From Vitrella brassicaformis CCMP3155 (taxonomy: Eukaryota > Protista > Chromerida), in the NCBI GenBank assembly GCA_001179505.1, contig CDMY01000385.1:310001-374000 (forward strand): DNA of 64,000 nucleotides. The letters are read 5' to 3'. The notes below the pieces were generated by a model. The model did no database searches, was not told the DNA's origin, and was given only the letters and a program-made list of their open reading frames with translations. A program made the translations under genes and the position numbers. Position 1 is the stretch's first letter, and every line of letters begins with the position of its first letter. This document shows, piece after piece, positions 10,001-60,226 of the stretch.

Positions 10001-12445
10001 TGATGGTGTGGTCCGTGCGTCGCTCACTGTAGCATTCGATGGATCGTCGTGTGAATTTGCCGTCGATGCATGTGACATTGACGGTCTCCTTGATCTGCCC
10101 CTCTGCCACAGCATAGCCCTCCTCCTCGTTGCAGCTGATCATCAGCGCCGTCCCGTGGCTCTCCAATGTGCCCTTCTCCAACAGATCGCCCTCGTCCGCA
10201 TCCGTGGTGTTGGGCTGCTGCTGCTGCATAGCCTCATCCTCCTGCAGGTTGAGGGCGATCTGTGCCAGCTCCATCATGTCGGTCGGCAGCACTCCCTCCG
10301 TGTCACGCTCCGTCTTGAAGCGCGGCGCCGGCGCGTCCTGGTACGGCGGACACATCTCTGCAACAAGCCCACAGAGAGAGAGAGAGAGATGCACAGGTCT
10401 CTGTCTCTGTCTCTCTGTGTGTGTGGGGGGGGGCNNNNNNNNNNNNNNNNNNNNNNNNNNNNNNNNNNNNNNNNNNNNNNNNNNNNNNNNNNNNNNNNNN
10501 NNNNNNNNNNNNNNNNNNNNNNNNNNNNNNNNNNNNNNNNNNNNNNNNNNNNNNNNNNNNNNNNNNNNNNNNNNNNNNNNNNNNNNNNNNNNNNNNNNNN
10601 NNNNNNNNNNNNNNNNNNNNNNNNNNNNNNNNNNNNNNNNNNNNNNNNNNNNNNNNNNNNNNNNNNNNNNNNNNNNNNNNNNNNNNNNNNNNNNNNNNNN
10701 NNNNNNNNNNNNNNNNNNNNNNNNNNNNNNNNNNGGGGGGGGGGGGGAGTTCACGTACGTTTGCATTTGAGTGCGATGTTCTCCCACGTGCCGTCCCTCT
10801 GGCACTTGATGTGCTGCTGCGGCAGACAAGGGTCTGCGGGCGAGTAGGCCTCGGCACACGCAATGTCCCTCCAGCTGCCATACGAACGGCCGGTGTCGTG
10901 ACCGGCTTTGATCGCCAGATGCTTCTCCTGAGGCAAGGGGGGCCGCTGGGGGCACTTCTCTGATGAATGAGATAAGGAGCAAGGACAGTGGTGAATGGAT
11001 GGATGTGTCTGTGTCTCGGTGTGTAGATGGTGATGGGCTGGTTACTGAGGCAGGAGCACGAGCAAGTTGCACTGCCAAACTCGTTGACGGAGTCTACCTT
11101 CCAATCGCAGGTCTCCTCAAGATCACTCTGCACAGTCCCGTCACCACAGTAGCCCTGGAGCTCTGCACACACACACACACAGACACACCAACCGGGCATA
11201 CAAAGTATGATCCATTTGCTTTGTATGTGACTTACCGAGTGGGCTAGATCTGTAGCTGTCGAGTGACTGTATAATGTTCTCCTCTTTCATGGCGTTCTCG
11301 CGGATGTGCAGAAATGACACCTCGCCGTCGAGGCACTCGGTGCCGTAGATGGTGCACCCGAAAGTGAGTCTCCCCGGCTTCTTCAGAATGGCCGCCAAGG
11401 CCGCGTCATGCACCTCCCGCAGTTGGTCGCGGCGACGATTGAACTTGTAAACACCATACTGCACCAAAAGCACACACGTGAGAGGGTGGATGTGTGTATA
11501 TCGGTTAAGTGAAGTGGGTGGGTTGGTGGCTGACCTCGACGAGTTCCTTGCCCTCGTCGTCGGCCCTCACTCTGAGTACGAATGCCCACAGCTGCAGGAA
11601 GTGCTTGCAGGTCTCCTTGGTGAGTGTGAGGATGGTCTTGTCGCCCCCCACCCAGGCCAGCCCGACTTTCATCCCCAGCATGTCCACGTCCTCCGAGTTG
11701 CCCCCGCCCTCACCCACCTCCTTACCTCCCTCGTCAGTCACACCCTCGGCGAACGGCGTCGAGGCCGCCGTAGACCGGCTGTGGTTCTTGAAATGGTCCA
11801 GCGGCTCCAGGATGATCGACAGCCCGGCCTCGGTGGAGAGCAGGGTCTGTCTGCGGGAGGGGGGCTTGTCTGTCTTGAGCCGGAAGGCCATGAATATGGT
11901 GGTGTTGGCCAGGGTGAAGGAGCAGGCGCTGGTCATGGCGTTGCCGACGCCTTCAGGAGTGGGGAGCGGGTTCACGCCGCCACTGCAGATGCACAGAGCA
12001 GCAACCGATGGATGCATCGCACCCATGAAGGACTGTCTGCTGTCTCTAGAATGTCTTACTGAGTCATCTTAGGTCCGAGCTGCTTTGGGTTGGTCTTGAG
12101 CGAGAGCTTCCTCTTGACCTCCGGCTCTTTAAAGTCCGTCATTCGCTCTATATGCGTCGTGTCCTCCTCGTCAGGCTCCGTCCTGTCGTCCTCGGGCCGG
12201 GCGTCAAGCTCCTCATAAGACGCCACGGCCTCGTCACACGACTGAGACGAACACTTGCAAGGCGGCTTCTCTGGGGCCTCACTGACGATAGTTGTCGAGG
12301 AAGCTCGACGAGAAGAAAGTGCCGTCGCGGAAGCCACCTTTGCCGCGGAAAGACGAGGCAGCAGGGATGGGTCAGCGTGACCACTCCCTCTCACGATGGG
12401 CACACATGACGCCACGAAGACAACAGTAAGGGAAACAACAGCCAT
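1033..12445 (-). CDS. Giant secreted multi-Sushi/CCP protein (signal peptide, LamG/pentraxin-like domain, CGDG Cys repeat, ~22 CCP-like modules; ~2,600 aa). As assembled it has an in-frame TGA and frame breaks, so it may be a recent pseudogene
   Basis: ATG at 12445 gives MAVVSLTVVFVASCVPIVRG (signal-like). About 31 exons. Repeated module C-P-x-[FY]...Y-x-V...(H)G....C...C..G.W....L.C, mostly one module per phase 1-1 exon (e.g. 10759-10959, 9321-9521, 8694-8879, 7399-7590, 7121-7303, 5108-5299, 4853-5041, 4557-4754, 3869-4066; all multiples of 3). Last exon ends ...GYPDETSIACE* at 1033. No C-terminal TM or GPI stretch seen. Confidence 0.85.
6762..7061. other. Assembly gap (300 N) next to a poly-C tract
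   Basis: Run of Ns followed by a C homopolymer and (CT)n. Lies inside a Sushi-gene intron. Confidence 0.98.
10435..10734. other. Assembly gap (300 N) flanked by poly-G
   Basis: Run of Ns with G runs on both sides. Lies inside a Sushi-gene intron. Confidence 0.98.
11046..11162 (-). other. Myxococcus-type Cys-rich repeat (CGDG...E.CD, DUF4215-like) on its own phase 1-1 exon
   Basis: ELQGYCGDGTVQSDLEETCDWKVDSVNEFGSATCSCSCL matches CGDG-x6-E-x-CD-x(n)-C-x(1-3)-C. The exon is 117 nt. Confidence 0.65.
11236..11982 (-). other. LamG-like/pentraxin (ConA jelly-roll) domain of the Sushi gene
   Basis: Exons 11535-11982 and 11236-11458 encode SFTLANTTIFMAFRLK...RLTFGCTIYGTECLDGEVSFLHIRENAMKEENIIQSL, resembling the Laminin_G_3 pattern FT(I)..WF(K)...L.IG......F.G.IDEVRIY..ALS..EI..L. 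Confidence 0.55.
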
Positions 12446-12824
12446 TGCATTGCGGCAAGATCTGCAAAACGGGGGCGGGCGCGATTGCGATGGGGGAGAG
12501 GGGGAGGGAGGCGCGTCCGAGCAAGAACAAGGCGGGCCCTCGCTCCGTGGCTCCATTGCAGAGGGGCTCGGTGAGGGCACACAAGCTGACTGCGGAAGAG
12601 CTCCTTCCCTCCAGATGGGCGGGAGAGGCTCCAAATCCGCTCGCTATGCGCCAGTCAGCATCGCCCTGTCTTCGAGGCCGTTGCAGTGAGTGTTCAAAAG
12701 GGATGGGAAATGGATCAGGGGACAGGAGGCAGTCGGTGAAGTTGTTGCCTCTCAAACTATTCGGGTTTCAGGTGACCAAACGCCCGATTCCGGCCCCAGT
12801 TCGGTCTGGGGGCAGTGGTGTGAG

Positions 12825-12832
12825 AGCTCGCA
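12825..12832 (-). promoter_or_regulatory. TGCGAGCT element, Sushi-gene/hypothetical divergent spacer
   Basis: AGCTCGCA on the + strand, inside the 12445-13021 spacer. Confidence 0.6.
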
Positions 12833-13020
12833 ATTTGAGCCCCTCTCTCAAAAAGCGTTCATCGTTTGGATACAAGCCCTTTCAGCACCCAATTGCAAGC
12901 GACTTCGGAATCCGCGTTTTGCACTGATCGTGTCGCGATTGCCGCTCTCGTCATCATGCGGTTCGAGTCCTTCCTGCACCTGATGCACTTCGGATTTTTC
13001 ATAAGGCTCCTCACCCTGAC

Positions 13021-13730
13021 ATGGTGCCGCCCCCGCCCCCCATCAATGAAGAGGAATTCAAGCCCAAGGAGGTGCAGCAGAGGCCCACATGCACTGGGGG
13101 TGCTCGTCGCGCAGCCCGTCGGGGGAAGCGAGGACAGCAATTGCCGGCCCCTGCAGCACTGCAGCAGCCCAGCATCAACAGCATCAGCAGCAGCACCGGC
13201 ATCAATAGCGGCACCGGCAGTGCAAGCGGCAACTGGATCACCCGCGACAAGGAGGCAGAGTATCGAAGGTGGACGGCTCCCGCAGCTGCCGGGCAAGCCG
13301 AATTGGGCGACAAGGAACAAGAGAACAAGGGCGGCGTCAGCAACAACGGCAAGGTGAGAGCGAACTTGGATGGAGTCTCAATGACATGGCATTGTAACGG
13401 ATATTATCTATGTCTCTGCCGCACTCAGGATGTTCTTGCCAATGAGCCCTCATCGTCCGCTGCCTCTGCCAGCGCCAACGTCGACAAAAAGGCCACCCGG
13501 CTGCAGCGTGTGACGCTGCGTGAGCACGAGTTGCCCATGGCAAGGGCTCCGGTGGCCGAAAAGATGGCATCGGTGCTGGTACGTATATGTGCACCTCCTG
13601 CACACATCTATCCGTCCACCTAGCACTTTCTTGTGTCGTGTGGATGCAAGCGGAGAAGATCAAGGGCAGCGGCCCCAGCGTGGTGTGCAACAACAAACAC
13701 GCCAACACCAAATACAACAACGGAATCTGA
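13021..13730 (+). CDS. Hypothetical low-complexity protein (2-3 exons)
   Basis: ATG 13021 MVPPPPPINEEEFKPKE.... GT-AG intron at ~13354-13428 keeps frame (NNGK|DVLANE). The putative last exon (KIKGSGPSVVCNNKHANTKYNNGI*) has coding-like codon usage but its acceptor is uncertain. No domain recognised. Confidence 0.45.
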
Positions 13731-15558: not shown

Positions 15559-22000
<6,442 letters not shown>

Positions 22001-22145
22001 CTGCTGTCACGGTCAGCGTCCGTCTCAGAGGGAGGGTGGCGTGCCAAAGTGGAAAGCAAATGGCTCAAAGGAGGTGCTCAAGGCGATAGAAGACCCCTGA
22101 TATCGGGAAAAAGATGGGAGATGGCGGACGGGAGAGATCCGCGCG

Positions 22146-22161
22146 TGCGAGCTTGCGAGCT
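22146..22161 (+). promoter_or_regulatory. Tandem TGCGAGCT x2, DEAD-helicase/XPO7 spacer
   Basis: tgcgagct-tgcgagct-taaa, inside the 22000-22640 spacer. Confidence 0.65.
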
Positions 22162-22639
22162 TAAATGTGCAAGAGGGAAAGTGACGCGAAGAAGGAGGTG
22201 ACGTGATTGCTGTGTGGCCGCGCAATCACACGCGGCGAGAGCGAGTCACGTGGCGAAGCAACTGAGATCTCGAAGGCGAGACTCGCCGAGAGGCTCTTGC
22301 CATCTGGTAGTGGTCATCTGGTAGTTGCCCGGCCTCTCGGCTCGTCGAATCGCCGTGTTGGCAGGTGCAGACGCAGACATAGGGTGCATGTAGACACACT
22401 CGCGCAAACGCATGTTGGCTGACGTCATCTGTCGCTCTGTCTGTCTGATGCGTGCAGGTGTGTGTCGGGAGCGTGCGTGCCTGCGTTGCCTCCCTGAGAG
22501 ACCACGAAAGCCAAGTTTTAAGAAGTCTAGAGGACCCCTCCCCGCTTGCAGCTCCCCTCCCTGCCCCTCTCCCCCTCTCTCCCTGGTTGTTGTCGGTGGT
22601 GCGGTGCCGTGCGTGTGTTGTATGGAGAGTATCGCCACG

Positions 22640-25600
22640 ATGGACCCGTCTGAACTCTCTCAGATGGAGGTACGCCAGCTGCCACACGGCCAACCACCGC
22701 AAACACGCACGCCATGGATGTTGGTGGTGTGTGTGGCGGTGTGCCGGGCAGACTTTGTGTAACTCTCTGTACAACGCGACAAGCGAGCAGGAGCGCTCCC
22801 AGGCGCACACCATCCTCATCCCCCTCACACAGGACGCCAGCCAGCTACCCCGGCTGCAGAACCTCATCGGCACCTCAAACCAGCCACACGCCCTCGTCTT
22901 CGCAGCCACGGCCGCCCTCAAGATCATCACCCAGTTCTGGGCACAGATCGGCGACACGCAGAAGGAGGAGCTGCGGTCCTTCCTCCTCAACTTTTTGGCG
23001 CAGAAGGGGCCGGACGTGCTGCGGAGCGCGCCCCAGGCCCTGACGCAGGTGATTCGGCTGGTGTGCCGGATCGTCAAGCTGGCGTGGCTGGAGGGGCCGC
23101 AGCACCAGACCATCACCGAGCACGTCGGGCAGTTCCTGCAGGCGTCGACGGTGCACTGGGTCATCGGGCTGGAGATCTACTGCGAGCTGACGACCGACAT
23201 GCAGCCGCAGCTCGGGCCCAGCATGTCGCGCTTCAGACGCACCGCGCTGTCCTTCCGCGACACGGCGCTGCCGAGCATCTTCACGGTGGCCCTGTCGACC
23301 CTGCACAAGATGCACGCCCGGCAGCTGCAGATCCCCGAGCAGACGCAGGAGAGACGGCTGCTGCGGCAGGTGCTGTCGCTGTGCTGCTCCTGCCTGAGCT
23401 TCGACTTCATGGGCACGATCCCCGACGAGACCTCCGACGACCAGCAGACCGTCATGGTGCCGCACGGGTGGTCGATGCTGCGTGACGACTCCATCCCGAC
23501 GCTCTTCCTCTCCCTCTACCAGCGGACCTGCCAGGACAAGCACTACGACTGCAGCGTCATCTGCCTCCAGTGCCTCGTGCTGCTCTCCTCGCTGAGGCGG
23601 TCATTCTTCCACAAGGAGGAGGACCGCGCCAAGCTGCTGAGCAGCCTTATCATGGGCTGCACCCAGATCCTGAGCAACAAGGTGGGGCTCGACGACGGCA
23701 GCAACTACCACGAGCTGTGCCGGCTGCTGGGCAAGATCAACACCGCCCACCAGCTGACGGAGCTGTGCGCAGCGGACGCCTTCCAGCAGTGGATCGACCA
23801 GGTGTACCAGTTCACCATCGAGAGCCTGCAGAGCTGGCAGCACATGCCCAACAGCAAACACTACCTCCTGCAGTTCTGGTCCCAGATGGTCAACCCACTC
23901 CTCTTCGCAAATGCCAAGGACAAGGCGCCCAAGGCACTCGAAGGATACATCCAACAGGTGCGTCCGCTCTCTCTCCCTCCCTCCACCCACCCCTCCCTCC
24001 CTCCCTCCCTCCATCCATCCATCCATGTGTGTGTCTCGGTTGGTTCTGTCTGTCTCCCCCCCGCCCGCCCTCTATCTGCAGATAACGTGTGCGTACATCC
24101 AGTCGCGTTTGCTGATGGCCGAGGCCTTCTCGTCCGACTCGTCCGTCCTGTGGGAGGACCCCCTCACCGACGAGGTCATGCGCAGCGAGCAGCTCGAGGT
24201 CCTCGCCTCACTCGGACGCTGCAAGCCGCAGGAGACCGCCCAGGTGCTCATGAAGTTCTTCGAGCAGGTCACCACACAGGGCCAGGCGGGCCAGCTGAGC
24301 CAGGTGGTCTTCGAGAAGAAGGTCACCTGGCTCGTCTACATGATCGCCGCCTTCATCGCCGGCACAGCCAACATGAAGACACCCGTGGCGAGCGGCGGCA
24401 ACAGCGACCGCATCGACCAGCCCGCCGCCCCCGCCGTGCCCCCACACGTCATCACGGGGGAGCTGTCGTCCCGGGTGTTTCAGCTCATCAATTTGACCGA
24501 CAGCCAGTCGTCGGCCCCCGAGGACCTCGAGCTCGCCTACCTCTACTTCCTCGAGCAGTTCCGAAAGGTCTACTTCGGAATGCACGCCAAACAAATCTTC
24601 CAGGTGGGTGCACGCAACACGCCACACAGCACAGCGGTGCGGTGCTTGGGCCGCGCTGATGGACACTCATCATGTCGGTCCCTCTGTGTCTCTGTGTCAG
24701 GCTGAGGTGACAGAGCGTCTGTGCACGGTGCTGGGTTTGAAGGACGACGACGCCGTACTGGGTTTGCTCATCAACAAGATCGGCCGCAACTTCCAGCAGA
24801 GGGTGCACCTCGAGCAGGTCATCAAGAAGTCCCTCCAGCTCTTCTACGAGCTCGCCGCCGGCATCAACATCGTCCACACGACCGGGGGCGGCCCGGGGGA
24901 GCGCGCCGGGCCCATCTACGGCTCCCCCCTGCTGATCGTGTCGGGGCGGCTTCTGCTCAAGAACGAGACCGTGCAGTCGATCTTGCAGCGGCACAACCAC
25001 ACGCAGTTCACCTTCCTGCAGGTGCCGTCGTACGGCAAGTACCGCACCATGTACTACCACACCCTGGGCAAGCTGCTGTTCATGGAGGTCAAGGACAACA
25101 AGGAGCCCTTCGAGGAGTTCATGCAGCCCCTCTCAGACGTCGTCGCCTCCATGTGGGCGCCCCCACAGCTGCCCCTGGCGCCCACCCAGCTCCGCGCCCC
25201 CCAGTGCAAGATGCCCCTGATCGGGCTGTGCAGAGACCTGCGTGGCCTGTGTCTGGCCTGCATGAATGCCGACCCCTACAACCTGCTGTTCAGCTGGCTG
25301 GTCGAGAAGCCCAAGCAGCCGCAGATGTCCCGGCTGGGCCTCTTTGCGGCGGCCATCGACGTGTGGTGGGACGACCCCGACGTCGTCATCCCCCTCCTCA
25401 AGTTCATGTCCGAGTTTGTGCACAACAAGGCCAACCGCATCGCCTTCGAGCCGACCAGCCCCTCGGGCATCCTACTCTTCAAGCAGGTGGCCAACGTGCT
25501 CTGCACCTACGGCCAGCGGATGGTGACGCGCGACTGGTCGAGTGTGGGGCCGGGCGTGTCGAGCGGGCAGCTGTACCGGATCCGGTTCAAGGGCATCGGC

Positions 25601-29203: not shown

Positions 29204-29245
29204 CTCAGCAGCCAACTGTAAGCCAACACAAAGAAGCAGGGACAC

Positions 29246-29253
29246 TGCGAGCT
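29246..29253 (+). promoter_or_regulatory. TGCGAGCT element, SNARE/coiled-coil spacer
   Basis: tgcgagcttaaa, inside a 154-bp ATG-to-ATG spacer. Confidence 0.65.
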
Positions 29254-29356
29254 TAAAGTGTAAAGTTCGCCTTGAAACAAAAATGCGCTGCCGCTGAAGG
29301 GCGTGTGTTGATTCGTTTCGGTTCTTTCGTTCGTTGATTCATCCATTCATTCGGCG

Positions 29357-35166: not shown

Positions 35167-35174
35167 AGCTCGCA
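35167..35174 (-). promoter_or_regulatory. TGCGAGCT element, orphan/PCBD spacer
   Basis: AGCTCGCA on the + strand, inside a 200-bp spacer. Confidence 0.6.
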
Positions 35175-35215
35175 CCCTCCCAGATTCCCCGACGACAGAG
35201 CAAAGAGGTGTGCGG

Positions 35216-39143: not shown

Positions 39144-39319
39144 GGCAGCATCGCACCTGCTGCTGGAACTCGACGACTGCATAAAGCGATAGATGACAGA
39201 TCCAAGCGAGAAACCATTCTCTGCCTCTATTGCAAGTCCTGCGGCTCACGTGAAGCTGGCTGCAAGCGAAAGATGAGGCCGCAGGACTTTTCCGCCGAAA
39301 ACGAAAGGCGATCCTAGCT

Positions 39320-39327
39320 TGCGAGCT
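39320..39327 (+). promoter_or_regulatory. TGCGAGCT element, CELF/DCP2 spacer
   Basis: ctagct-tgcgagct, inside the 39143-39711 spacer. Confidence 0.6.
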
Positions 39328-39710
39328 GTTGAAGGGATGGCAAAGCAGCCAAACAGCCTGTTTCAACGTGCGCCTCAGTAACTCGGTGACCGGCATCACA
39401 AACACCTGACGCGGAGGTTTCCCGGCGCTGATCATCGGCTCGTCTCCCCCCGTGTGGAGGGAGCAACAAGCCGACAACACGGGAGGCCTTGACTCAGCGA
39501 GACTCGAGTACTCTTCTACCGTACTTCGACAAGCAATCATATTTGTTCACACGGCTCTAGAGGCGCCTATCCGCCACCAGCCGGCAGCTTCCGGAGCTCT
39601 GTTTGACGCGGCTTCAGGCCAGGCAGCCCGTTTCGACTGATCGCAGCATCGCCTGCTGTGTGTCGGCGTGTCTGAGTGTGTGAGAGTGAGAGTGTTTGAC
39701 GGCTCACGGC

Positions 39711-43327: not shown

Positions 43328-43329
43328 TG

Positions 43330-44940
43330 GTATCGCGCACGAGTGTGCTTTGCCGTGCTGTGCTGTGCTGATGTGATGGGTTCATATCGATACGAGTACG
43401 CGTGAGCTGAGCAGCCTGCCCGCCCGCCCGCCCGTTTGTTTGTTTGCCCGTTTGCAGTTGCTTTTGGAGGCTCGGCTCTCTTTTCGTCGGCTGCATTTTT
43501 TGCTGTTTTGCTTTCTACGTATGTATGCGTCGGGCTGTAATGTGTGTGTGTACGTATGTGTGTACGTGTTGAGTCTGAATCGACATGGGATTACCCGCTG
43601 CCCGTGTGAGCTGCCTGCCTGCCTGCCTGCTGTGGCAAGCTGTGCATCTCATGTATCCGGCGTGTTCTGCGTGGTGTGTGTGTGTACCGACTGACCTGCG
43701 AAATCGATCCATGGTGACTGACACGAAGAAAGCTGGCTAGGTCAGACCAACAAGAAGACAGAGGAGACGGTGGAGAGATGGTGAAGATGACGTCAGGGCC
43801 GGCCTCTGGGGAGAGTGCTTGCCGCTCAGTTCTGGTACGAATGTGTGAATGTGTGTGTGTGTGTGTGTGCACACACACGATGCATACATAGATGAGATTC
43901 ACCCACCGATAAGTCGATCGACGGGAGGAGGGAGAGGAAAGAGAGAAAGAGGGAGGGGCTGGAGGCAGCCAGTCAGCCAGCGAGTGATTGATTGATCGAT
44001 CGATCGATCAGCATTTGTACATGCATGGGGTCACGTGCCTCTTCCTTGTCCCCTCCCCTCCCTTTCCTCCCCTCCTCCCTTTTTCCCACGCCGTGCGCAA
44101 TCGGGCGTGTCGCAATATCATTGACTGATCGATTGATTGACCGGCTGATTGCTTGTACTCGTGTGTATGGGCGTGTGTGTGTGTGTGTGTGGGTGTGTGT
44201 GTACTCGTGTCTGTGTAGACGAGGAAGGAAGGGTGTTTTGGAGGGGCATACAAACATACGACTGACTGCGATGATGTGTTCTCTCCGGGCCGCTTTCTTG
44301 CGTCATGGTGTCTGTCTTGTTTGTGTTGGGGTGTACACGCACACACGCACTGCTTCTGTGTGGCTGGCTGACTGGCTGGCTGACTGGATGGCTGTCTTGA
44401 CTGAGAGAGGAGGGGCAAGGACGGATGACCATGACGTGGCTGCAAGATTGTTTTTCGCTGCTGCTGCTGCTGCTGGTGTGGTGCTGGTGGTGGTGCTGCT
44501 GCTGAGGGATGGAAGAATATGTAACGTAACGCCTGAAGGGTGATCCAACTGGGGAGCATTTTCATTTTGGCCCCGTTGATGATGGGTTGGCTGACTGATT
44601 GCGGGGGCCTGTTTCTGAGGGATGCTGTCTTGGTAGGTACACGATGCTCTGGCCAGCCGTCTGTCTGTCTGTCTCTCCGGGTGTGCATGTCAGTTGTGGG
44701 CCAACCAAGCTATCTATTTCTCCATTCATTCATTCGTGTGGTGTCTGTCTGTCTCCTTCTCTCCTTGTCGCCTCGCTTGTACATCTGTCTGTATCATACA
44801 TACAATAAATACAATGCCATACCAGCCATAGAGATGATGAGTGAGTCTCCCCCCCACCCACCCCACAATCTCTCTCTCGCCCCTCCATCCATCTGTGTGT
44901 TCTTGGTCCGGTCCATCACATCCCGCCCCCCTCTCCCATC

Positions 44941-44971
<31 letters not shown>

Positions 44972-46900
44972 GTCTGTCTGTTTGCCTGTCTGTCTGTCGT
45001 CTTGTCGATGTCGATAAGAGCTACGCTGATGAAAAACTGAGTGAGAAGAATGGCACTGAATCAAATCAGTTCAGCCGAGACACGGATATGCATGTGCATG
45101 TGGCAGTTTTGCGTATGTGCGTGCATACGTGACGTGCGACTCTGGATGATGAGAGGGATGGGCCTGCGGGGCGGGGCGGGACGGGGCGACTGTGTTTGTG
45201 TTGTGTTGTGTGTGCCCCTCCTTTCATACGTGCGCACACGACATACACACATCAGGTGAGGTGACAAGAGAAGACAAGAGAGAGGGGAGAGAAGAGGGGA
45301 GGGGAGGGGAGAGGAAGAGAGGTGTTTTCTTTAATTCGAATGCTCACCATACATGGCAACCGACACACACAGAGGGGCGAGAGAGTTTTCGGGTCTATGA
45401 CGTGTTGTTCGACCGGTCTGTTTTGACTGCTGGTTGCGCTGCGCTGCCCTGCCCTGCCCTGCCCTGGCCTGGCTGGCTGCTGTGCGTGCGAGAGTGAGTG
45501 CACCGCTCATGAGCTGTGCGCATTACATACCTACATACGTGGGGCACCTGATCGAATGAGGATGGCCTGAGCTGTCTGTGTGGCGTGCGTGGCTGTGTGT
45601 ATGGTTGCTGGGTGGGTGGCTGTTTGTGTGTCTTGGTGAGTGTGATGTGTGGGGTGAGCAAGTAGCTTTATGGGAGGCTCGGTGTCTGTCTGTCGATCAT
45701 TCATTGATCCATCAGCGGAGAGGGAATGACCAGCCTGCCAAGACAGGAAGAAAGATCGACCCCTTACTTATACATAACACAAGCACCCATCTATCCGATC
45801 TATACATAAATACAGAGGTCAGGCCAGGCAGGCAGGCACCGATTTGAAGGGGGGAGGGGGGGGAGGGAGGGCGACGGGCTGCATGGCGGGGGGGCCGGGG
45901 GCTGGCTGCGCATGGATGACCGACTGGGTCCGGGTGGCTGTCCATCCATCCATCGCCGTATCAGTATGACCGCACCGCACTCTATCTCTCTTCCGTTCGT
46001 GTGCCTTCGTGTCGAGTCTCTTTCCTGTGTGCGTGGCGTGTGATTGTGAGGGAGGGAGGGAGGGAGGGAGGGAGGCGGCCACAGACAGACACGGCCACAG
46101 AACGATGCAGACAGGAAGACGAGAGAGACAGCACTCACTGCGTCACTGACTGGTCTGGTCTATCTACTGGCCGATGAGTCGAGTCGAGAGTACAGTACCT
46201 CTATCTGCTGCTTTCTCAAAACCTCACACACCAACACCACGCCACCATTATGCATCCACGCATCCATCCATATTCGGCGCTGTGCCTATTCTTGGCTCCA
46301 GTGTCAGTCATTCATGTCATTCTAACACGCCAAGTGGTGCCTCTCTGCTCGTAACGTAACGTACAGCGCTCTCTCTTTACGTGTCCAACACGACTGTCTG
46401 TCTGATGTGTGTGATGTCATAGCTACAGATCCTGTTTGCCGACTGCTTTGTCTGTGTGCTGCCTGTGTGCGTGGTCTCGTCGACTGTGTGTGCCTGCGTT
46501 GCTGGCGTCGTATTCCCCTGACTGTTCGTTCGACTGACCGCAACAGTCACGGAATAGGACACCAGCGATGCAGGCGCCGACATCGGGCCCGTGCATGCGA
46601 TGCGGACCGTCTGTCTGCCTGTCTGTCTGTGTGCAAAGTGATGTCGATCATGGCTGGCTGGCTGCTTTTACGTGGTTGGGATGCCGTCACGTCACACCAT
46701 TACACTGCTGCCTCTCCGCTGTGCTGTGCCGCCCTCCTTGTCGGAGGCCTGCTGCCTTGCTTGTCCCTGACGATCCCGGGGCCATGGACAGTCATCCATC
46801 GACATGTCAGACAGACAGGAAGGGCGTAGCATCAGTCGAGGCATGCCAACTTGTGACTGCAGAGTGGTTGCCTGGTTGGGACTGGGGATGCACGGGGACG
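43330..46900. repeat. Long non-coding microsatellite mosaic ((TG)n, (TGTC)n, (GATC)n, (GGGA)n, (GCCCT)n)
   Basis: About 3.6 kb between DCP2 and the molybdoenzyme with no convincing spliced ORF; its ORFs are translations of simple repeats. Confidence 0.6.
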
Positions 46901-46977
46901 GAAAGGGAGTAGAAACAGTCCCGCGCCACACGTAAACTTTCACGGAGTGCTCCCTCACCGCAGAAGAACACAAATCG

Positions 46978-50013: not shown

Positions 50014-50044
<31 letters not shown>

Positions 50045-50045
50045 A

Positions 50046-50345
50046 NNNNNNNNNNNNNNNNNNNNNNNNNNNNNNNNNNNNNNNNNNNNNNNNNNNNNNN
50101 NNNNNNNNNNNNNNNNNNNNNNNNNNNNNNNNNNNNNNNNNNNNNNNNNNNNNNNNNNNNNNNNNNNNNNNNNNNNNNNNNNNNNNNNNNNNNNNNNNNN
50201 NNNNNNNNNNNNNNNNNNNNNNNNNNNNNNNNNNNNNNNNNNNNNNNNNNNNNNNNNNNNNNNNNNNNNNNNNNNNNNNNNNNNNNNNNNNNNNNNNNNN
50301 NNNNNNNNNNNNNNNNNNNNNNNNNNNNNNNNNNNNNNNNNNNNN
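50046..50345. other. Assembly gap (300 N) flanked by poly-C
   Basis: About 30 C on the left and a C run on the right. Confidence 0.98.
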
Positions 50346-50409
50346 CCCCCCCTCCAACCGTCCCAAAACACAAAACAAACGTCCAGCACGCCCTCACGCG
50401 GGCGATCTC

Positions 50410-52983
50410 CTAGTGCCGACGGCGGCTGTCCTCTGCTGCGCCACCTCGCCCGTTGCGTCCTCCTCTCGGTCTGCCTCCGTTGCCTCCTGGCCCGCCCCGC
50501 TGGCCCGGCCATCCGCCGCCCCGCCCGTTGTGTCCGTTGTGGCGGTAGTTGGCGTGCTGTCCATCGGCGGCGGCCGGGTGCGGCAGAATGACCGGGAAGC
50601 CATTCGGCTGCTGGTGCTGTGGGTGGGGCTGCAGGTTGGTGAAGTGCGGATTGATGTCCGCGTTGAAGGCCGCCTGCTGCTGGTGGTGGTGGTGGTGGGC
50701 GGGGTGCATGTTGTGGTTTGCCCACCCGCCGTAGACGCGCTGCGGGCGATGGAAGGGCTGGGGCTGATGGTGATGATCATGATGATGGCCGCCCTGCCCC
50801 ATCGCACCCCCTCCCCCAAGATGCTGGCCGTAGTTGCCCAGCAGCCCGCCTCTGCTGTCGTGGCCGCCATGCTGTCCCTGCCCGTATCCAAAGTGTCTGC
50901 CGTTGTGGCCGGCGCCGTTGAGGGGTGTGTCGGGAGGGGGCGGTGGGCGGGTGCTGTTGTTGTTGTTGTGCAGCGGCGACTCTCCCATAGCGAACCCGTT
51001 GACCTGTTGCTGCACACAGACATATACAATACACACAGATGCTTACACACAATCATAGTGTATGTCTGTATTCCTTCCTCACCTCATGTGCGGGTGGCTG
51101 GGGGAATTGGCCATGGCCGTGGCGGGCTCGTGGGCCAGCGGCGTCGGATCGAATTGGATTGGCGGGGGTGGCGGGGGAGCAGCCGAACCAAACAGCTGGG
51201 CAACATGGGCATCATGAGGCCTGGCTGCATGCCGTTGCCCATGGCGGCGAGGGCCATTATGGGGAGAGGGGGCTGCGGGAAGAAGGGCACAGGGGGCACC
51301 GCTGGCATCATCTGCTGCGGCGCAAATGGCTGCACCCCCGCGGGCCCCCCTCCCTCACCACCACCGACGGGCTGCTCCACAGCCGGAGGCGCCAACACAC
51401 CCGCACCCGCACCCTCCCCCTGCCCCTCCCCATCCCCTCCCTCAGCAGCGCTCTGCTGCGCCTCAGGCGGGGGGAACTGCGGTGACTCCACGGCCACGGC
51501 GATGGGTGGCGGAGGAGCGATGGAGTGGGCCGAGTTGGGGATAGATGGCGGCACGAACGCGTGCATTGGCTGCAGCTGGGGCTGAGCAACAACACCTGCC
51601 GGGGACGCCTCACCATTGCTGGACTGCCCGAGTGCTGCTGCAGGGTTAGAGGGGGGAACGACCACAACATCACCCTCTTGCTGCTCCTGCTGTGCGCTCC
51701 CTGCCGCCCCGCCGTCTCCCTGGCCCTCCTGCTGAGGCTGTGGCTGTGGCTCCATTGGCTGCTGCTGCTGCTGGTCAGCCACTTGGACGAAGTTCGGCTC
51801 ACCAGCGGCGTCCGCTTCCAGGCGGTAGTTGGAGGGCGGGCTGTAGTAGCCCGGTCGTTCTCCGCCCTCCGGCTGCATGCCGAAGTAAGCACGGGGTTGG
51901 AAGGCCTCAGGAGGCTGGCGGCCGCCGTGCAGCTCGACATTCTGCCCCAACCACTGCATGGTGTCAACCATGACGGCCTCATCGGCGGCCTCACCCTGTT
52001 GGCACGCCGGCGGCTGCATACAGAGAGAGGGAGCGATGGTTTGAGTGCTGTCAGGATCTGGTGTGGCATTGTGGATTGTCTTACTTGGTCTGTGCCTTGC
52101 TGATCTTGGTCAGCGGGCGGCTGCTCCGCGTTACTTGGCGGCGGCTCGTCAGCAGGCCGCTCGTCAGGTTGCTCCTCAGCAGCAGCATCTCCAGACAACT
52201 CGGCAGCAGCATCAAGAGGCGATGGCCCGTCCTCCGTCTGCGCCTCAACACTCTGCAGACACATAGAAAGGAATCAGAGACACAGAAACCGATGAAGGTG
52301 ACAGACAGAGAGGTTCTCCTGTGTTCCCTTCCTGCTCACCTCGACAACGACAATCTCCGTCTGGGTCGTGGCATGCCCCTTGCCCTTCGCCCCCTCCCTC
52401 CCCATGCCCTCCCTCGCGGCCTTGAGGCACTCGTCCTTCACCTTGACCAGGATCGCCATCTCGTGCTCCTTCTGCAACTTGCTCTTGACCTTCTCGGCCT
52501 CCTCACGCGACAACGTACTGGGCTCCCGCGCCTCCAGCCGAGCGATGGCTTCGAGGGCCTTCCTGTACTTCTTGATCTCCTTGAGGATGATGCCGAAGCT
52601 GTAGTCGTGCTCCTTCAGGTACTTGATCAGCCGCTCGTCGTCCTCCTGCCCGGCTGACTGCCCCTCCCCGTCCTCCTTGGGCGGCGTGTCGGTGTCCTGG
52701 TGCGTCTGCTGGGCGGGGGTGCTGCTGCTGTCCGCTGACAGAGGCTCTTGGCTGAGTCCCGGCTCGTCCTTGCGGGCTTGGTCCTCGTTCGCTGGGGCGA
52801 CGGCATCAGGTGCGGCCTGGGAGGGCTGGTTGGCGGGCGATGCTGCCGGGGCGGGCTGTGAGTTATTCTGAAGCGCACAGAGACCACAGGGACGTAGCAG
52901 AGGCGTGTGGATGGTCAGAATGTGAGGGCATGATAATCATCATGTGCATTTCTCACCTTGTTCTTGTTCTTCTTCTTCCCCAT
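50410..52983 (-). CDS. Putative RNA-granule protein: PYM/eIF2A-C/Caprin-like helical hairpin, P/Q-rich middle, H/N/Q-rich and RGG C-terminus
   Basis: ATG 52983 MGKKKNKNK|NNSQPAP.... Hairpin GIILKEIKKYRKALEAIARLEAREPSTLSREEAEKVKSKLQKEHEM. Last exon ...GRGGGWPGQRGGPGGNGGRPRGGRNGRGG.... The junction into the last exon has a frame problem (see findings). Confidence 0.6.
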
Positions 52984-53087
52984 GACTGACGGGATGGTGG
53001 GGATTGTGGCTGAGGCTCTCCTCTCTTCGGGCCTCGCTGAAAGAGAGAAGAAGTGGTGATTTCAACGGCAAGGCTCGCGCCGTTGAA

Positions 53088-53095
53088 AGCTCGCA
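53088..53095 (-). promoter_or_regulatory. TGCGAGCT element, RGG-protein/AlkB spacer
   Basis: aaAGCTCGCA on the + strand, inside a 160-bp spacer. Confidence 0.65.
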
Positions 53096-53142
53096 GGTGC
53101 GAAGCTTCAGAACCCTTTCTTACGGGGTAATTTTGCCGCGTC

Positions 53143-54227
53143 ATGCAGCCCGCCACGCCATTCGCACGGCAGAAGAAGCGACGCGGATCTGATCCAGGTA
53201 GGCAGCACAGCGGTCCGTTGCATTCATTCATCCCATTCGGTCGTTCTCACATTTGCAGATTCATCAGACGGTGCCGCTGCTGATCAGCCCAACGGCCATG
53301 GTGCTAGTCCCTCGTCCGGCGAGGACATCCCGCCGTCCATTCTGAGTGGCCTTGCAGACTGTCAGCGGATTGACCTGCCTGGCGCCGACGTGCTGTACGT
53401 GCCCCGCATCTTCACGAGAGAGGAGAGCACGGCCTTTGTGGCGCAGCTGGCGGCTCTCGAGCAGTGGAAAAGGCCCGAGTTCAAGATATTCGGCAAGGTG
53501 CACTTGCAGGGCAATTACAGCTGCCACTTCAGCGACGGAGGACAGCTCAACTACCGATACTCGGGCAGGGACAATGTGGGGCAAGAGGTACACCCAATCG
53601 CACACACAGACAGACAGACAGACAGACAGATAGACAACAGCGCCGCCCCTCTTTTCATCTCACAGTGTGTCTGTGCGACTGGTGCACCCATTCAGTTCCC
53701 CGAGTTTCTCCAGGCCATCAGGCGGCGTGTGGAGGCCGTTGTGAGGCACATCGACGGCCAGCGGACCGACGCTAAGATATGCCCAGGTGATGGTGAGTTC
53801 CAGTTCAACTACTGCCTGGCCAACAAGTATGAGGACGGCAACGCGTCGCTGGGGATGCACTCGGATGACGAGCGCGACCTCTTTGGACCCATCGCCTCAG
53901 GTGGGTCAGCCAGTGAATGAATGGATGAGGCAGACAGACAGACAGACAGACAGACAGGTGAATGTCGTGTGTGTGTGTGTGTGTGCAGTGTCGTTCGGCG
54001 CCACACGTCACTTCACCTTGGCCCACAAGCGGGACAAGTCGGTGAAGCGGCGGATTGACCTGAGTGACGGGTCTCTGCTGGTGATGGCGGGGGACACGCA
54101 GAGGAACTACAAGCACGGGGTGCCCAAGATGAAGAGGGTCACCGACATGCGCATCAACCTCACCATGAGATGCATCAGGCCCAGAGATAGCAGCAGGGCG
54201 AGCGGCAAGAAGAGGGCAAAGCGATAG
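53143..54227 (+). CDS. AlkB family Fe(II)/2OG dioxygenase, ALKBH2/ALKBH3-like
   Basis: Four exons. MQPATPFARQKKRR (NLS-like), FKIFGK, YRYSG, FNYCLANKYEDGNASLGMHSDDE (HxD), IAS|VSFGATRHF, GSLLVMAGDTQRNYKHGVPK (H), RINLTMR. Confidence 0.9.
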
Positions 54228-54619
54228 ATAGGATGCTACGGATACAGGAGTGGCCGCCTGAGTGGATGAGATGAGTACGCTAACTAACTAGTTACATGTG
54301 TGGGGTGTCTGTCTGTCTGTCTCTCTGTCTGTCGACAATCATGAGCGGAGCGGAGTGCCTTTCCTTTCGTATGCCGTGCTGTAGATAAAGGCAATCCTGG
54401 CTGCCAATTCAACTGTCACCAAAGGGTCCCTCCCTCGTCACGCACGGGTGTGGTGTGCAACAAATGCATCATCCATCGTCACGTCATGTCACGTCCAGAC
54501 AGGCGCGAAACACGATTTAGCTATACAGCACACGAATAAAACCATCACGAAAGCAGACAGGACAGGACAGGACAGGACCTCTCTCTCCTTTGCACCGCAC
54601 CCATCCGATGGATCCGATC

Positions 54620-57107
54620 TCACAGCCGCTGCTGCTGTGTTGACGTCACCTGAGAGCACACAGTTTCGCAGGTGGATATGTATAAAAACAAACGTGTGTC
54701 CGTCGCGGGCTGGACTGTCCGTGTGTTTGTCTGACCTTGACATCGACGAGTCTGCCGCCCCGGAGCAGCTGCAGCTTGACTGTATCGCCAGTGCGGTAAC
54801 CCATGCTCTCAAACACCTGGACACACGCAAGCAACCAAGAATCAACCGAGTGTGTCTGTGTTGGCGTGTTGGTGCCCCTGTCCTGTGTTCGGGTGTGCAA
54901 TGGTGTACCTCGAAGTGTGAGTAGACAGGCTGCCCGTTGACAGAGAGGATGAGGTCCCCACTCCGGATGCCCGCCTCCTCTGCTGGCGTGCCACCCTTCA
55001 CCTGTGTGGTAAGACGACGCACGCTCCATGCACACACCCTCCCTCCCTCCCTCCCTCCTGCTTGCTGCCCATACCATCCAGACACACACATGCCTCACCT
55101 CACCTGAGCGACGAGGACGCCTCTCCTTGCCTTCTCCCCCCCTGGATGGTGGTGGGTGTCGGGGGTGTGTGCCGCCTTGGGGTGCAGCAGCTTGTCCCAG
55201 AACCGGCCGGCGCCCGACCCGCTGCCCTCATCCTTCTGAACCGTCTCCTCGCCCTCTACCTCATCCACATGATCCTTCAACACCATACCTGAACACGACA
55301 CGTACAAACAAAGAAGCTGAGCTGGTACAAACTTGCTGATGTCACGTCACGGCATCCATCCATCCTACCGAGGTATGGGAAGGTCCAAGAGCCCGTCTCT
55401 TCGATACAGGAGGCGACGCCGTGGACATGCTGGATCGGCAGGGCCAAGCTAAGACAGACAGACAGACACATCGACCAAATCAAGAAGGGGTGGAAAATAT
55501 GGGCCGAGGGATGAATTGATGAGTGGTGTCGTGTGTCTGCGGTGGCTACCCATATTCTTGGAACTTCTTGACCACCATGGCGACCACCTTGCCGTGGACA
55601 TCGCACACGGGTGCGCCGGACATGCCGGGGATGGTGATCATGCCCATCTGAATGAACCGGATCCGCTGCCCCTCCTCCAACTTGCGAAACGACTGGACGA
55701 ACGGCAAGCATATTTATGTATGTGCTGTATCATAATCCGCTGGTGATGGTGTCTGCTGAGCCACGTACTTGTCTTGGTTGGCTGACGGTGCCCATGACAG
55801 CTACTGGCTCGTCGCCGTACTGATGCACAAGACAGACAGACAGACACACAGACACACAGAGGAAGGGTGCGGTGCATCCGCCATACATGACGGAGGCTGA
55901 CTGATCGAATTACCTGTGTGGTGCCATAGGTGACGACCCACTCTCCCTGCCGAGGACGCTCACGGAGGTTGGCTGCACCAGTCGTTCCGTCATGTCAAGT
56001 GAATGAATGGCATACGAGATTGAGAGACTGCAGTGTTTTCGTTTCTTTGAAGTACTTACCGAAAGTCACGGCGGGGAGCTGCAGGGGCTTGGGGGGCATG
56101 ATCTGAAGCACCGCCACATCAGCATCTGGAGTGAGTGGAAAAAATCGACAGGCAGCAGCGTCTCGTCTCCCGGACCGCAGATCAATGAGGGTGTGGTGCG
56201 GTTCTTACCGCTGCTTTTGCCCCTGACGTTGGCCCTGAACCACCTGCCGTCGCTCATGCGGACGAAGTACTGGAAACCGCCAGGCGTCCCGGGCGGCGGC
56301 TGGGCCTGACACGACACGTGGATGTAAGCCATCACATCGACGCATCCACACACGGCACCTCAATCAATGCTTGTGGTTCCCTCGCTCCCCTTACCTCAAA
56401 GAGATGGCCAGCAGTCAGCACAAAGCCTGATCGCAAACACACCCCACATGATATCATAATGGGTCGATCGGCGGGGCCCCCACCTTCCCCTCCCTCACTC
56501 CCCCCTCCCTGCCTGGCTCATGCACCGCACCTTCCGGCTTGTAGATAAAGCCCGAGCCCAGGTAGATGGCGTCCTTGAGGGGCTGGTGCCGCTCCGCAGA
56601 CGCATATATCCTGACCATTGCAGGCCGCAGCTGGTCAAACAAGTGGGCGAAACCCGACTGGAAGTCCAGCATCCCAACCGATGCAGACGGGGGGGACGAG
56701 GGGGGGCTTTCGGTTGCTGATGGCTCCTCGCAGCGGCAAGCAGATGGGCGTTGAGAGGGGGACAGCCATGACAGAAGCAGTAACACAGCAGCCATACCGG
56801 TCAGTGGGAAGAGGATGGAGGGGGCGTCTGCTGTAGGGTCCCAAGATGCTTCAGAGCCACACGGGAGGAGGCGAGGATGGTGCTGATAGCAGAGTCGCCT
56901 CCACGCTGTTTCGTGCTGCTGCGGGAGAGGGCCACGCATCCATCGGGTCACTGCACCCGTCACGTGTGGATGTGTTTGGTCGTCGCAGCGGGGTGTTGCA
57001 TCGCAGCTGGGCTGCCATGTCGTTTGCTGCTGCAGGTGCTGGCTCCGCAGCCTCCCCAGAGCTGCCAGCACCCTCCTCCGAGCGCCGACGGGAAGAGCCG
57101 TCCTCAT
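54620..57107 (-). CDS. HtrA/DegP-family serine protease (trypsin-like + PDZ), HtrA2-like mitochondrial topology
   Basis: Arg-rich leader MRTALPVGARRRVLAALGRLRSQHL, then a TM-like LFPLTGMAAVLLLLSWL. LGSGFI, triad LTAGHL / DVAVLQ / PGMSGAP, ALPI, PDZ YLGMVL...GVLVAQVKGGTPAEEAGIRSGDLILSVNG. About 12 exons, ending VTSTQQQRL*. Confidence 0.88.
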
Positions 57108-57211
57108 CCAGTCAACAAGGAACGGAGATCTTTGAATAAGACGAACGATTCGTGGGCAGGTGAGCCGTAGGGAAGCGCTCTGCGTGCCTTTTGCGGACGT
57201 GGCGATCCGTC

Positions 57212-57219
57212 TGCGAGCT
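57212..57219 (+). promoter_or_regulatory. TGCGAGCT element, HtrA/LMF spacer
   Basis: tgcgagcttagct, inside a 258-bp spacer. Confidence 0.65.
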
Positions 57220-57364
57220 TAGCTCCAGGGGGAGCAGAGGCCCGCCTTTTTCTGTATCTTCGTTGGAGAGACCGACATCTTGCTTTTGAAGCGGCGGCCA
57301 TCCCATGTTTCCAGCTGACTGTCTTCCATCGTGGCTCAGACGCTGATAGTCGTTCAGCGTCAGG

Positions 57365-60226
57365 ATGAGGCCGCATCAATTTTCCTCCGTGGCTGCCGCC
57401 CTGCCGCTGTGGCTCATCTACGTGGCCTCACTGCGCCCCTCGTCCCCCGTTCTCTCTTCCTTTGCTATCGGCCCTTTACCTGCCGCTCTCTCTTCCAAGC
57501 GCCTGCCCACATTTCATCCATCGCACAGCTGCTGCAATGGTCGCAGGGGACTCGCAGCTCCGTGGGTCATGATGGACGATGAGAGGGGCGGAGAAGATTC
57601 GGTGCTCACCTTCCACAGCCCGCCTCGTGACAGCAGCATTTTGCCACCATCGGAGTCGCTGCCTGACGGGACCACCGGCAACAAAGCAGCATCGCCTAAC
57701 GCCACTGCAGCAGTGTCGGCTACACGAGAGGAGCCGTATCCAGATGAGAACGAGAATGGCTCGCGAGGCAGGACCTTCCCCCTCCACCGGCTGGCAAAGC
57801 TCGTCAGAGCGAGGAGGAAGAAACTGGCTCACGACACCACGAAGACGGCGGTCCGTCCGTCCCGGCCGCTGCACTCGTATCTCACGCCCCGGGTAGGACG
57901 GTCGTTTCTGCGCTCTTTCCTGGTTCTCGGCGCTCTATTCCCATTCAGCGGGCTGCTGGCTCGGCTATGGGGTGCCAAGTGGGTGGCTGGGGCGCCACCG
58001 TTACACCACACCTTCTACCTGAGTCGGTTTCTCTTCTTCCGTCTGTTGGGCGTCACTGCTGCTGGGGCCTTCCTCTCCATCGCAGCACAAGGTAGGCCCG
58101 CAGACCAGACACACACACAGTGGGTGCACTGCGGCATCCATCTCTTACGTCACGTACTCTTTTTCTGTATCACTGGATGTCGTTAGGCAACTCTCTGTTT
58201 GGTCCACAGGGGATCCAGCCCCTCTCCAGAGGCATTGCCGAGATCCGGCGACAATATAGGTTGCTCTCTGTGAAGGATAAGCTCCGTGAGCTGCCGTACG
58301 GCCTGACAGCCATGATATGGGGCGAGGGCAGCAGGGGGCGGGTGAGGGGCGTGATGGCTCTTGGAGTGTTGGCGGCGGTGATGAGCGTGTGCCACTGGGG
58401 AGGGCCGGTGCAGCCTCTGCTGCTGGCCACGCTGTATAGTCTGTACTTTGCTGTCATTCAGGTCAGTCCTGAAGTATCTGGATGAGTCAACCAAGCAACG
58501 GGGAAGAGGGAGATCGACAATTGGCCAGTTGGTGTCGTGTTCTGCATCTGTGTCATGCAGGCAGGCGACTCCTTCCTGACATACCAGTGGGACGTCCTGT
58601 TGTGCGAGTCGCTGCTGCTTGCCACCATTGCTGCCATCCCTTCCCCCAACTGGCTGGCACACAGGTACCTATGCCTATCTGCATGATCGCGTCGACGGAC
58701 GAACGAATCGGATTGTGCCCACACTTGCTGTGCGTTACTCCCTTCCGTCAGGTTGTCGATGCTCCCACTTCAGCTCCTAGCTTTTCGGTACGCAAGGAGC
58801 GCATTTTGTGCGGGGAGGGGAGACAGCACCCGCCAGCCGCACACCACACCCACGCCTCCTCCTTTTCTCTCTGTCTGTCCGTGTGTTGTTTCTTTCGCAG
58901 TTTGATGTTCATGTCCGGCGTGGCCAAGCTGGCAAGTGCAGATCCGACGTGGTCCAATCTCACCGCACTGGATTATCACTTCCAAACCCAGCCGCTGCCC
59001 AAGCCTGCCGCAGCTCGGCTGCATCGGATGCCGCGAGCTGTCCTCCGCTTCGGGACGGCCCAGACCTTGGCAGTGGAGGTGCTGGCGCCGTTTCTCCTCC
59101 TCTGGCCCTTCTCATACGCCAGGACAATCGGTGAGTGATGCGAGAGGGGCAGCAGGTGCTGACTGACACGTGCGCTCTTGTCGATCGTCGTCTTGCCTCC
59201 TTTCTTCGTCTCACAGGTTTCGTGTTGCAGCTGATACTGCAGCTGGGCATCATGTATGCGGGACACTTTGGCTTCTTCAACTTCCTCACCATCGCGCTGC
59301 TCACCACCACCCTCGACGACGCCACCCTCATGCCACTCGCCAACGCATGCCGCGACGCATTGGCAAGCACCCCGCTCGCTCAGCTCTCTCTCCCAGCTGT
59401 CGGCCAATGGCTCCAAAGTCAGATCGGGACATCAGCTTTATCAATGAAGCGTCTCGCTCTCTCGTCAGCGCCCTTTGGTTTGGTCGCCACACTCATAGCG
59501 GGTGTGTACTGCTTGACCATGACGCGGGCGCTGCGGTTGGGTGGGGGGATGGGGATGTTGCGGTCCTGGCGGAGTGTGGTGGGGAGCTTTCTGGTGGGGT
59601 CGCCGTACGGCCTGTTTGCGAGCATGACAACCAGGCGACAGGAGATCATCCTGGAGGGCAGCGCTGACGGGCAGACTTGGTGGGAGTTCCATCATCGGTA
59701 CAAGCCTGATGCGATCGACAAGGCTCCAAAGCCGCTGGCACCACTGCACATGCCCCGTGTCGACTGGAACTTCTGGTTCCTGCCGTTGCAAGGTGAGCAA
59801 CCGCACTCGAAAGGATGGGTCCACCTCCCTCCGTCAATGCCCATGTCATGTCCCCTGTGCCCTTCTCCCCCCATCCACTCCCATCCACACACAGGTGGAG
59901 TAGCGTCGAGCCCGTGGTTCTTTTCCCTCGTCAGGCTGATCCTCGAAGGCTCGCCTGACGTGTATCGCATCTTCACACGCAGCACACGGCGGGCAGCCGA
60001 CACTGATGAATGGACAGCCGCCGTGGGCAGCAAGAACGACACGTCGCGAGAGCTGCTGCCGTTTTCCCCTGCAGAGCCGCCCAAGTACGTGCGTGGCAAA
60101 TTGTATACATATGAGTTCAGTGGGGGTGCGGGTGGCGGGGAGGGCGGGGGCGAGTGGGAGGAGGGCAGGCACTGGCGGCGCAGGCTCGATGGTGTGTATC
60201 TGCCGCCGGTTGCGCTGAGGCCGTGA
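57365..60226 (+). CDS. Lipase maturation factor (LMF1/2)-like membrane protein with a bipartite (signal + transit) leader
   Basis: RFLFFRLLG...AF, LFGPQGIQP, FLTYQWDVLLCES, LMFMSGVAKL..DPTW..LTALDYHFQTQPLP, LQLGIMYAGHFGFFNFLTI, YGLFASMT..RQEIILEGS, YKP...P..LAPLHMPRVDW..WF. Confidence 0.9.

Follow-up and report, generated by a model that had tools for sequence, protein, structure and literature searches.

In a 64,000-nt stretch of the Vitrella brassicaformis CCMP3155 genome (assembly GCA_001179505.1, contig CDMY01000385.1, positions 310,001 to 374,000), which was analysed over its whole length and is called the window here, the exact 8-mer TGCGAGCT is enriched in the spacers between head-to-head gene pairs, has no homology in its flanks and lies 5-13 nt from the transcript ends mapped next to it. 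In our judgement TGCGAGCT, often in the longer form TGCGAGCTT(A), is probably a cis-element in the TATA-less core promoter that the two genes of a head-to-head pair share in this organism. V. brassicaformis is an alga and a close free-living relative of the malaria parasites; the choice of transcription start sites (TSSs) in alveolates without TATA boxes is poorly understood, and to our knowledge chromerids have no described promoter element. An exact word beside the start sites of essentially every shared promoter would offer a handle on this choice as well as a bait for purifying the factor that reads it.

Distribution of the word in the window

The window holds nine exact copies of TGCGAGCT, against 3.18 on average, and never more than 8, in 100 dinucleotide-preserving shuffles. 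Eight of the nine, at seven sites, are located between the seven head-to-head gene pairs laid out in the original prediction, an earlier reading of this sequence which had proposed the word as a bidirectional-promoter element. All nine were recovered at the predicted coordinates:

12825-12832, minus strand: copy in spacer 1, between the Sushi-repeat gene and a gene for a protein of 185 amino acids (aa); annotated coding sequence (CDS) starts at 12445 (minus) and 13021 (plus)
22146-22161, plus strand: tandem copies in spacer 2, at 22146 and 22154, between the genes for a DEAD-KH helicase and XPO7; annotated CDS starts at 22000 (minus) and 22664 (plus)
29246-29253, plus strand: copy in spacer 3, between an STX6-like gene and an 898-aa gene; spacer of 153 nt
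35167-35174, minus strand: copy in spacer 4, between a 220-aa gene and the gene for pterin-4a-carbinolamine dehydratase (PCD); spacer of 199 nt
39320-39327, plus strand: copy in spacer 5, between an RRM-WW gene and DCP2; a spacer on the predicted gene models, annotated exon 1 in the deposit
53088-53095, minus strand: copy in spacer 6, between a 720-aa gene and the gene for an AlkB-like dioxygenase; spacer of 159 nt
57212-57224, plus strand: copy in spacer 7, in the 13-nt extended form TGCGAGCTTAGCT, between the Deg protease gene and LMF1
23181-23188, plus strand: ninth copy, in the XPO7 coding sequence and outside the element set

As predicted, five copies run on with T and three with TA, and when the contexts of the copies are oriented alike they yield the consensus TGCGAGCTT(A)(A/G), with little else in common. 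The copy at 23181 is a chance coding occurrence; outside the spacers about three chance copies are expected and one or two were found, and the full count agrees with the prediction that this is the only copy beyond them.

The gene arrangement behind this distribution was checked in two independent ways, by a codon-usage map trained only on the window and by the deposited annotation of GCA_001179505.1, whose contig sequence matches the window at 100%. The coding map contains exactly seven switches from minus to plus strand, every one of them at a motif site, and the annotation bears out the seven head-to-head pairs alongside two tandem junctions (5' of a sulfite-oxidase-like gene and 5' of a NIF-like gene) and six convergent ones. 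The claim that the word occurs in every head-to-head spacer stood in full on the predicted models (seven of seven) and for six of seven spacers on the annotation, where the copy at 39320 falls in an exon, so that "all seven" holds only if the exon 1 annotated at spacer 5 is rejected. In that gene, the annotated RRM/WW ATG at 39435 places the copy 116 nt inside exon 1, and the first coding exon (39138-39435, minus strand) has a coding score of -0.09 per codon and encodes an implausible peptide, which makes the annotated start doubtful. If the motif marks the TSS region here as it appears to do elsewhere, this start codon would lie 5' of the real transcript start.

Within the annotated head-to-head spacers, which together span 2716 nt, we counted seven copies at six sites where 0.137 are expected (P for at least six sites about 8e-9). 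The word has zero copies in the tandem spacers (4078 nt), in line with its predicted absence 5' of the two tandem genes, and zero in the convergent spacers (6800 nt) of the window, while the remaining ~49 kb contain two copies. For one given word of such frequency to occur in all seven spacers of the predicted models the probability is 2e-13, and after correction for all 32,896 8-mers, which allows for the post hoc choice of the word, it is about 7e-9. On those models the word is thus highly non-random and, save for the coding copy at 23181, confined to head-to-head spacers, as had been proposed.

These figures bear directly on the view that the distribution reflects chance, compositional bias or the remnant of a repeat or mobile element that inserts into promoters. 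In favour of such an origin, the word was picked after the sequence had been viewed, and in a cruder test with seven randomly placed segments some 8-mer was common to all seven in 2 of 2000 trials. The words behind those two trials were of low complexity, however, which TGCGAGCT is not, and the corrected probability already takes the post hoc choice into account. Furthermore, the density of the core is 0.013 per kb in unrelated metagenome DNA totalling 313 kb, a background made up of 53 loci of mixed GC content from a scan for the palindromic 17-mer TGCGAGCTWAGCTCGCA, versus ~2.6 per kb in the spacers. The likeness between the spacers also breaks off past 10-12 nt. Taken with these points, we consider an origin of this kind very improbable. 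The metagenome matches to TGCGAGCTWAGCTCGCA were themselves set aside as chance, being of mixed GC content and without extra copies of the word.

Apart from the 10-12 nt round the word, an all-against-all comparison of the spacers revealed similarity only in low-complexity G/A tracts, and a repeat or mobile-element remnant was rejected on the grounds that the spacers are without extended flanking similarity. The runner-up shared 8-mers were G/A-rich low-complexity words present in four of the seven spacers and the shifted word AAGCTCGC, likewise in four of seven. G/A-rich tracts of the GGGGAGGG type lie at 12490-12512, 22554-22583 and 39744-39768, in or edging three long head-to-head spacers, the last of them just inside the DCP2 coding start; such tracts are the only other likeness among these regions. 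As a second motif, CGATCC and TTGAAA/TGAAAC, each in three of the seven flanks, were discarded as being within multiple-testing noise. CGATCC is found within ~20 nt of the motif, on either side, in three spacers, and words of the TTGAAA/TGAAAC type are found on its AGCT side in three to four (e.g., 29275-29281, 39328-39333, 39362-39369 and 53081-53087), neither being significant after correction. A promoter of a small-RNA gene was likewise rejected, with no Rfam family at gathering score and no tRNAs in the window.

Transcript ends and the putative role of the word

RNA-type Logan contigs from four runs were aligned to positions 52001-58000, and three transcriptome contigs of the Joint Genome Institute (JGI) were added via exact-protein look-up. 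These RNA assemblies are unstranded, and a contig end sets only a minimum for the length of a transcript, without marking a capped 5' end. The PCD contig has its 5' end at 35180, leaving 5 nt to the end of the word at 35174. Contigs of the AlkB-like gene start at 53109 and 53115, the outermost being 13 nt from the word end at 53095, and the contig of the divergent 720-aa gene reaches only to ~52991, so that its start lies within 96 nt of the word. In spacer 7 both sides could be mapped, with the outermost 5' end of the Deg protease at 57203, separated by 8 nt from the word start at 57212, and that of LMF1 at 57232, separated by 12 nt from the word end at 57219. Between them remains the following feature:

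57204-57231, no strand: untranscribed gap of spacer 7, at most 28 nt long, centred on the word and free of spliced RNA-type contigs

Spliced structures were recovered for two genes in the aligned region, with a GT..AG intron at 53195-53255 in the AlkB-like gene and eleven CT..AC introns in the Deg protease gene. Unspliced, DNA-like contigs (ERR558149/151) run through the spacers, including the gap in spacer 7; they confirm the sequence and are uninformative on TSSs. The compact geometry of the spacers agrees with published figures for Vitrella, namely a median of 92 bp between genes and more head-to-head pairs than expected (PMC4501334); that paper reports no promoter motif.

In the window the word lies between divergent genes and is enriched there relative to the other sequence classes, and it may be placed with the known cis-elements of bidirectional promoters, albeit with an unusually tight geometry. 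We infer protein binding, activation and bidirectional action of the word. In the mechanism that we propose, the word would sit in a very short untranscribed gap that separates two divergent transcription units, where a putative sequence-specific DNA-binding protein probably recognises it and would keep the gap accessible; the bound factor could then recruit or position initiation by RNA polymerase II a few nt away, on one or both sides. The distances of 5-13 nt to the transcript ends are better matched by a core-promoter or TSS-positioning element than by a distal site for the "general activator" named in the original prediction, and since the partner genes are functionally unrelated a general promoter element fits better than a regulon.

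Two other roles have to be weighed against the same transcript ends. The word could be the site of a barrier or chromatin-opening factor that excludes nucleosomes or insulates the two genes from one another, with the choice of TSS left to other signals. Sites of the yeast factors Reb1, Abf1 and Rap1 and of the Drosophila factors DREF (the DRE) and BEAF-32 lie in the nucleosome-free region between close head-to-head genes of the housekeeping type; BEAF-32 at such genes is a published precedent (PMC3483549), and the yeast general regulatory factors and DREF may serve as further parallels. The confinement of the word to head-to-head spacers, its absence from the two tandem promoters and the unrelated functions of the partner genes agree with such a role as well. 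However, four transcript ends within 5-13 nt of the word are tighter than expected if the TSSs were chosen independently, and a gap of 28 nt in spacer 7 would hardly accommodate separate core promoters. The Vitrella word is unrelated in sequence to the sites of these general regulatory and insulator factors, which are not known to keep within ~10 nt of both TSSs. We regard a pure barrier role as unlikely.

Alternatively, the true TSSs could lie in or beyond the word, which would then be part of the mRNA as an initiator-like start or as a signal in the 5' leader. The contig ends stop just 5-13 nt before the word, the extreme 5' end is usually missing from assemblies, and divergent transcripts whose overlap is shorter than one k-mer would stay separate in an unstranded assembly, all of which would be compatible with a transcribed word. 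Against this, the six RNA-type assemblies that cover spacers 4, 6 or 7 (from the four runs and two JGI transcriptomes) all stop outside the word, and the LMF1 end lies on its AGCT side while the other three mapped ends lie on its TGCG side, which is awkward for an RNA signal. We judge a transcribed initiator or leader signal to be distinctly unlikely.

A bolder version of the shared core promoter would take the one compact, partly palindromic word as the complete core promoter, at which a single factor nucleates two opposed initiations less than ~30 nt apart, a spacing that would not admit two independent pre-initiation complexes next to one another. The word might in that case be a near-obligatory code for head-to-head genes genome-wide and possibly a relic from an ancestor of the Apicomplexa. 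We put this forward tentatively and consider it rather doubtful.

Several points weigh against the word being an element of a shared core promoter. The sample is small, with one 64-kb window and seven head-to-head sites, and one of the copies, at 39320, is within an annotated coding exon. The evidence on transcript starts comes from three of the seven spacers only, and from unstranded contigs that usually stop short of the true 5' end; the word could be within the first bases of one or both transcripts. In addition, a metagenome contig in the ENA (ERZ893784, k147_4437523, positions 1-2050) carries an orthologue of the 185-aa gene (13021-13730 in the window) from an environmental relative, with 74-95% nucleotide identity over the 3' coding part and the downstream region. 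The 330 nt upstream of this orthologue are largely unalignable and without the exact word, the sole likeness being AGCGCGC, about as far from the start codon; as the contig ends before the expected divergent partner, this counts at most mildly against the element. The same contig indicates that a fairly close relative of Vitrella is represented in public metagenomes and could be used for phylogenetic footprinting. Metagenomes from marine sediment likewise contain Vitrella-like DNA, with a divergence of roughly 3%. A contig of an unrelated eukaryote, also checked, holds no copy of the word.

The word had further been described as orientation-independent, which is borne out only insofar as it occurs on either strand. 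Its TGCG end, however, points toward the nearer start codon in all five firm spacers and, on the predicted models, in all seven; the rule breaks down at spacers 5 and 7 if the annotated starts are used there. Of the mapped 5' ends, the three closest lie on the TGCG side, and that of LMF1 is 12 nt from the AGCT side. A possible polarity of the word toward the nearer ATG is accordingly a lead only and not a result.

The local form of the copies differs from spacer to spacer. In spacer 1 the copy overlaps an imperfect inverted partner at 12821-12828, giving the combined sequence TGAGAGCTCGCA at 12821-12832; in spacer 2 the two copies abut head-to-tail as TGCGAGCTTGCGAGCT, followed by TAAA; TAAA also follows the copy in spacer 3, where the minus-strand ATG is 42 nt away; and AGCT repeats adjoin the word at 39316 and 57221. 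The tandem pair, the imperfect palindrome and the AGCT repeats hint at dimeric or multiple binding, as judged from their sequence. The 28 one-mismatch variants of the word are dispersed and mainly coding, the sole one in a promoter being the inverted partner at 12821. One-mismatch variants are hence not associated with promoters, which makes the exact word the unit.

In spacer 6, a perfect hairpin with a 10-bp stem (TTTCAACGGC...GCCGTTGAAA, 53061-53089) adjoins the word, and its loop holds GGCTCGCG, a two-mismatch relative of it. With RNA parameters, the 45-nt stretch around this hairpin (53056-53100) has a folding energy of about -17.8 kcal/mol.

Comparison with known promoter elements

The closest functional precedent for one short element that drives divergent TSSs appears to be the vertebrate CGCG element TCTCGCGAGA (Mahpour et al. 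2018, PMC6192621), which is enough for transcription in both directions, the main starts being 28 and 51 nt from it. Like this element, the Vitrella word is short, GC-rich and situated in TATA-less promoters, and both contain a GCGAG/CTCGC half. The two differ in sequence and symmetry, and the Vitrella word lies 5-13 nt from transcript ends as opposed to 28 and 51 nt. Furthermore, whereas a minority of vertebrate CpG-island promoters carry the CGCG element (PMC6192621), the Vitrella word is found, on the predicted models, in every head-to-head spacer of the window. Exact copies of TCTCGCGAGA number zero in the window, and CTCGCGAG occurs there once, outside the spacers.

The original prediction had also set the word apart from known apicomplexan elements, and none of TGCATGCA, GAGACGC, TATAAA, TCTCGCGAGA, GCTAGC, TAGCTA and GTGCAC occurs in any of the seven spacers. 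Among these, we take TGCATGCA, GAGACGC, GCTAGC, TAGCTA and GTGCAC to be apicomplexan promoter motifs or ApiAP2 sites. The Vitrella word resembles ApiAP2 sites in its length and in the lineage to which it belongs; unlike the apicomplexan motifs, which serve stage- or pathway-specific gene sets, it stands beside functionally unrelated gene pairs. Binding by an ApiAP2 protein, as suggested earlier, is plausible only in that chromerids encode many apiAP2 proteins (PMC4501334).

In human bidirectional promoters, the motifs of ETS/GABP, NRF-1 and YY1 are enriched, although they are degenerate and present only in a fraction. The Vitrella word is likewise over-represented in head-to-head promoters, yet unlike them it is an exact 8-mer found in six to seven of seven. 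In a literature search limited to part of the journals, we met the word and its longer forms only as primers or unrelated sequences, with no description of a Vitrella or Chromera promoter element.

Beyond the choice of start sites, the word could become the core of synthetic promoters for chromerid genetics, and it may be traced as a character in Chromera, colpodellids and apicomplexans. It can also act as a landmark for correcting the 5' parts of gene models, as two annotated start codons in the window look doubtful by it. The 28-nt gap between divergent transcripts, moreover, raises the question of how two initiation events use one site.

Gene models and further features of the window

The predicted ATG-to-ATG lengths of the head-to-head spacers were exact for four (576, 154, 200 and 160), while those of 640, 568 and 258 differ from the 664, 276 and 693 of the annotation. 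At spacer 2 the difference comes from the annotated XPO7 ATG at 22664, which gives a spacer of 664 against 640, 24 nt apart. At spacer 7, the Deg protease is annotated from the ATG at 56672 and not from that at 57107, and spliced transcripts extend its 5' exon to at least 57203. This RNA-supported 5' exon of the Deg/HtrA-type protease (56673-57203, minus strand) has an in-frame ATG at 57107 and constitutes either a leader of ~500 nt or a 145-aa N-terminal extension that resembles a targeting peptide (MRTALPVGARRRVLAAL...).

On the other side of spacer 7, the open reading frame (ORF) at 57365 and LMF1 form one 759-aa gene, so that LMF1 is not a separate tandem gene. This lipase maturation factor gene (57365-60226, plus strand) is a fusion whose 273-aa N-terminal part is without a Pfam match, and a homologue search returned mainly bacterial-type DUF393/DCC-LMF1 proteins at ~30% identity, with no close eukaryotic, Vitrella or Chromera entry. 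The best relatives of the XPO7 exon were found in dinoflagellates, Chromera, Perkinsus and apicomplexans, including a Chromera velia protein. Pfam scans of 30 ORFs of the window gave mostly no match, and in an exact look-up in a protein collection four window ORFs and the ORFs at 50397-51056 and 13021-13620 were not found.

Between the stop codons of the convergent AlkB-like (plus) and Deg protease (minus) genes there are 392 nt (54228-54650), and in several RNA runs the transcripts of the two are joined in single contigs, which suggests overlapping 3' ends. An assembly gap of 300 N at 50046-50345, also present in the NCBI record, falls between two convergent genes, whose stop codons are at 48948 and 50410; it is 2.7 kb away from the closest motif and is crossed by no annotated frame; a small gene could be hidden there, and the finding on the word is unaffected. 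Two more gaps of 300 N, at 6762-7061 and 10435-10734, are inside the giant Sushi-repeat gene, and on account of these internal gaps the 2513-aa product in the annotation probably lacks sequence or is mis-joined at these points. Finally, a non-coding, G/T-skewed region of 3.6 kb at 43328-46977, 5' of the tandem sulfite-oxidase-like gene, is rich in microsatellites (GT, GCT, TCTG, TGCCC and GAGG) and is by far the longest intergenic region of an otherwise very compact window.

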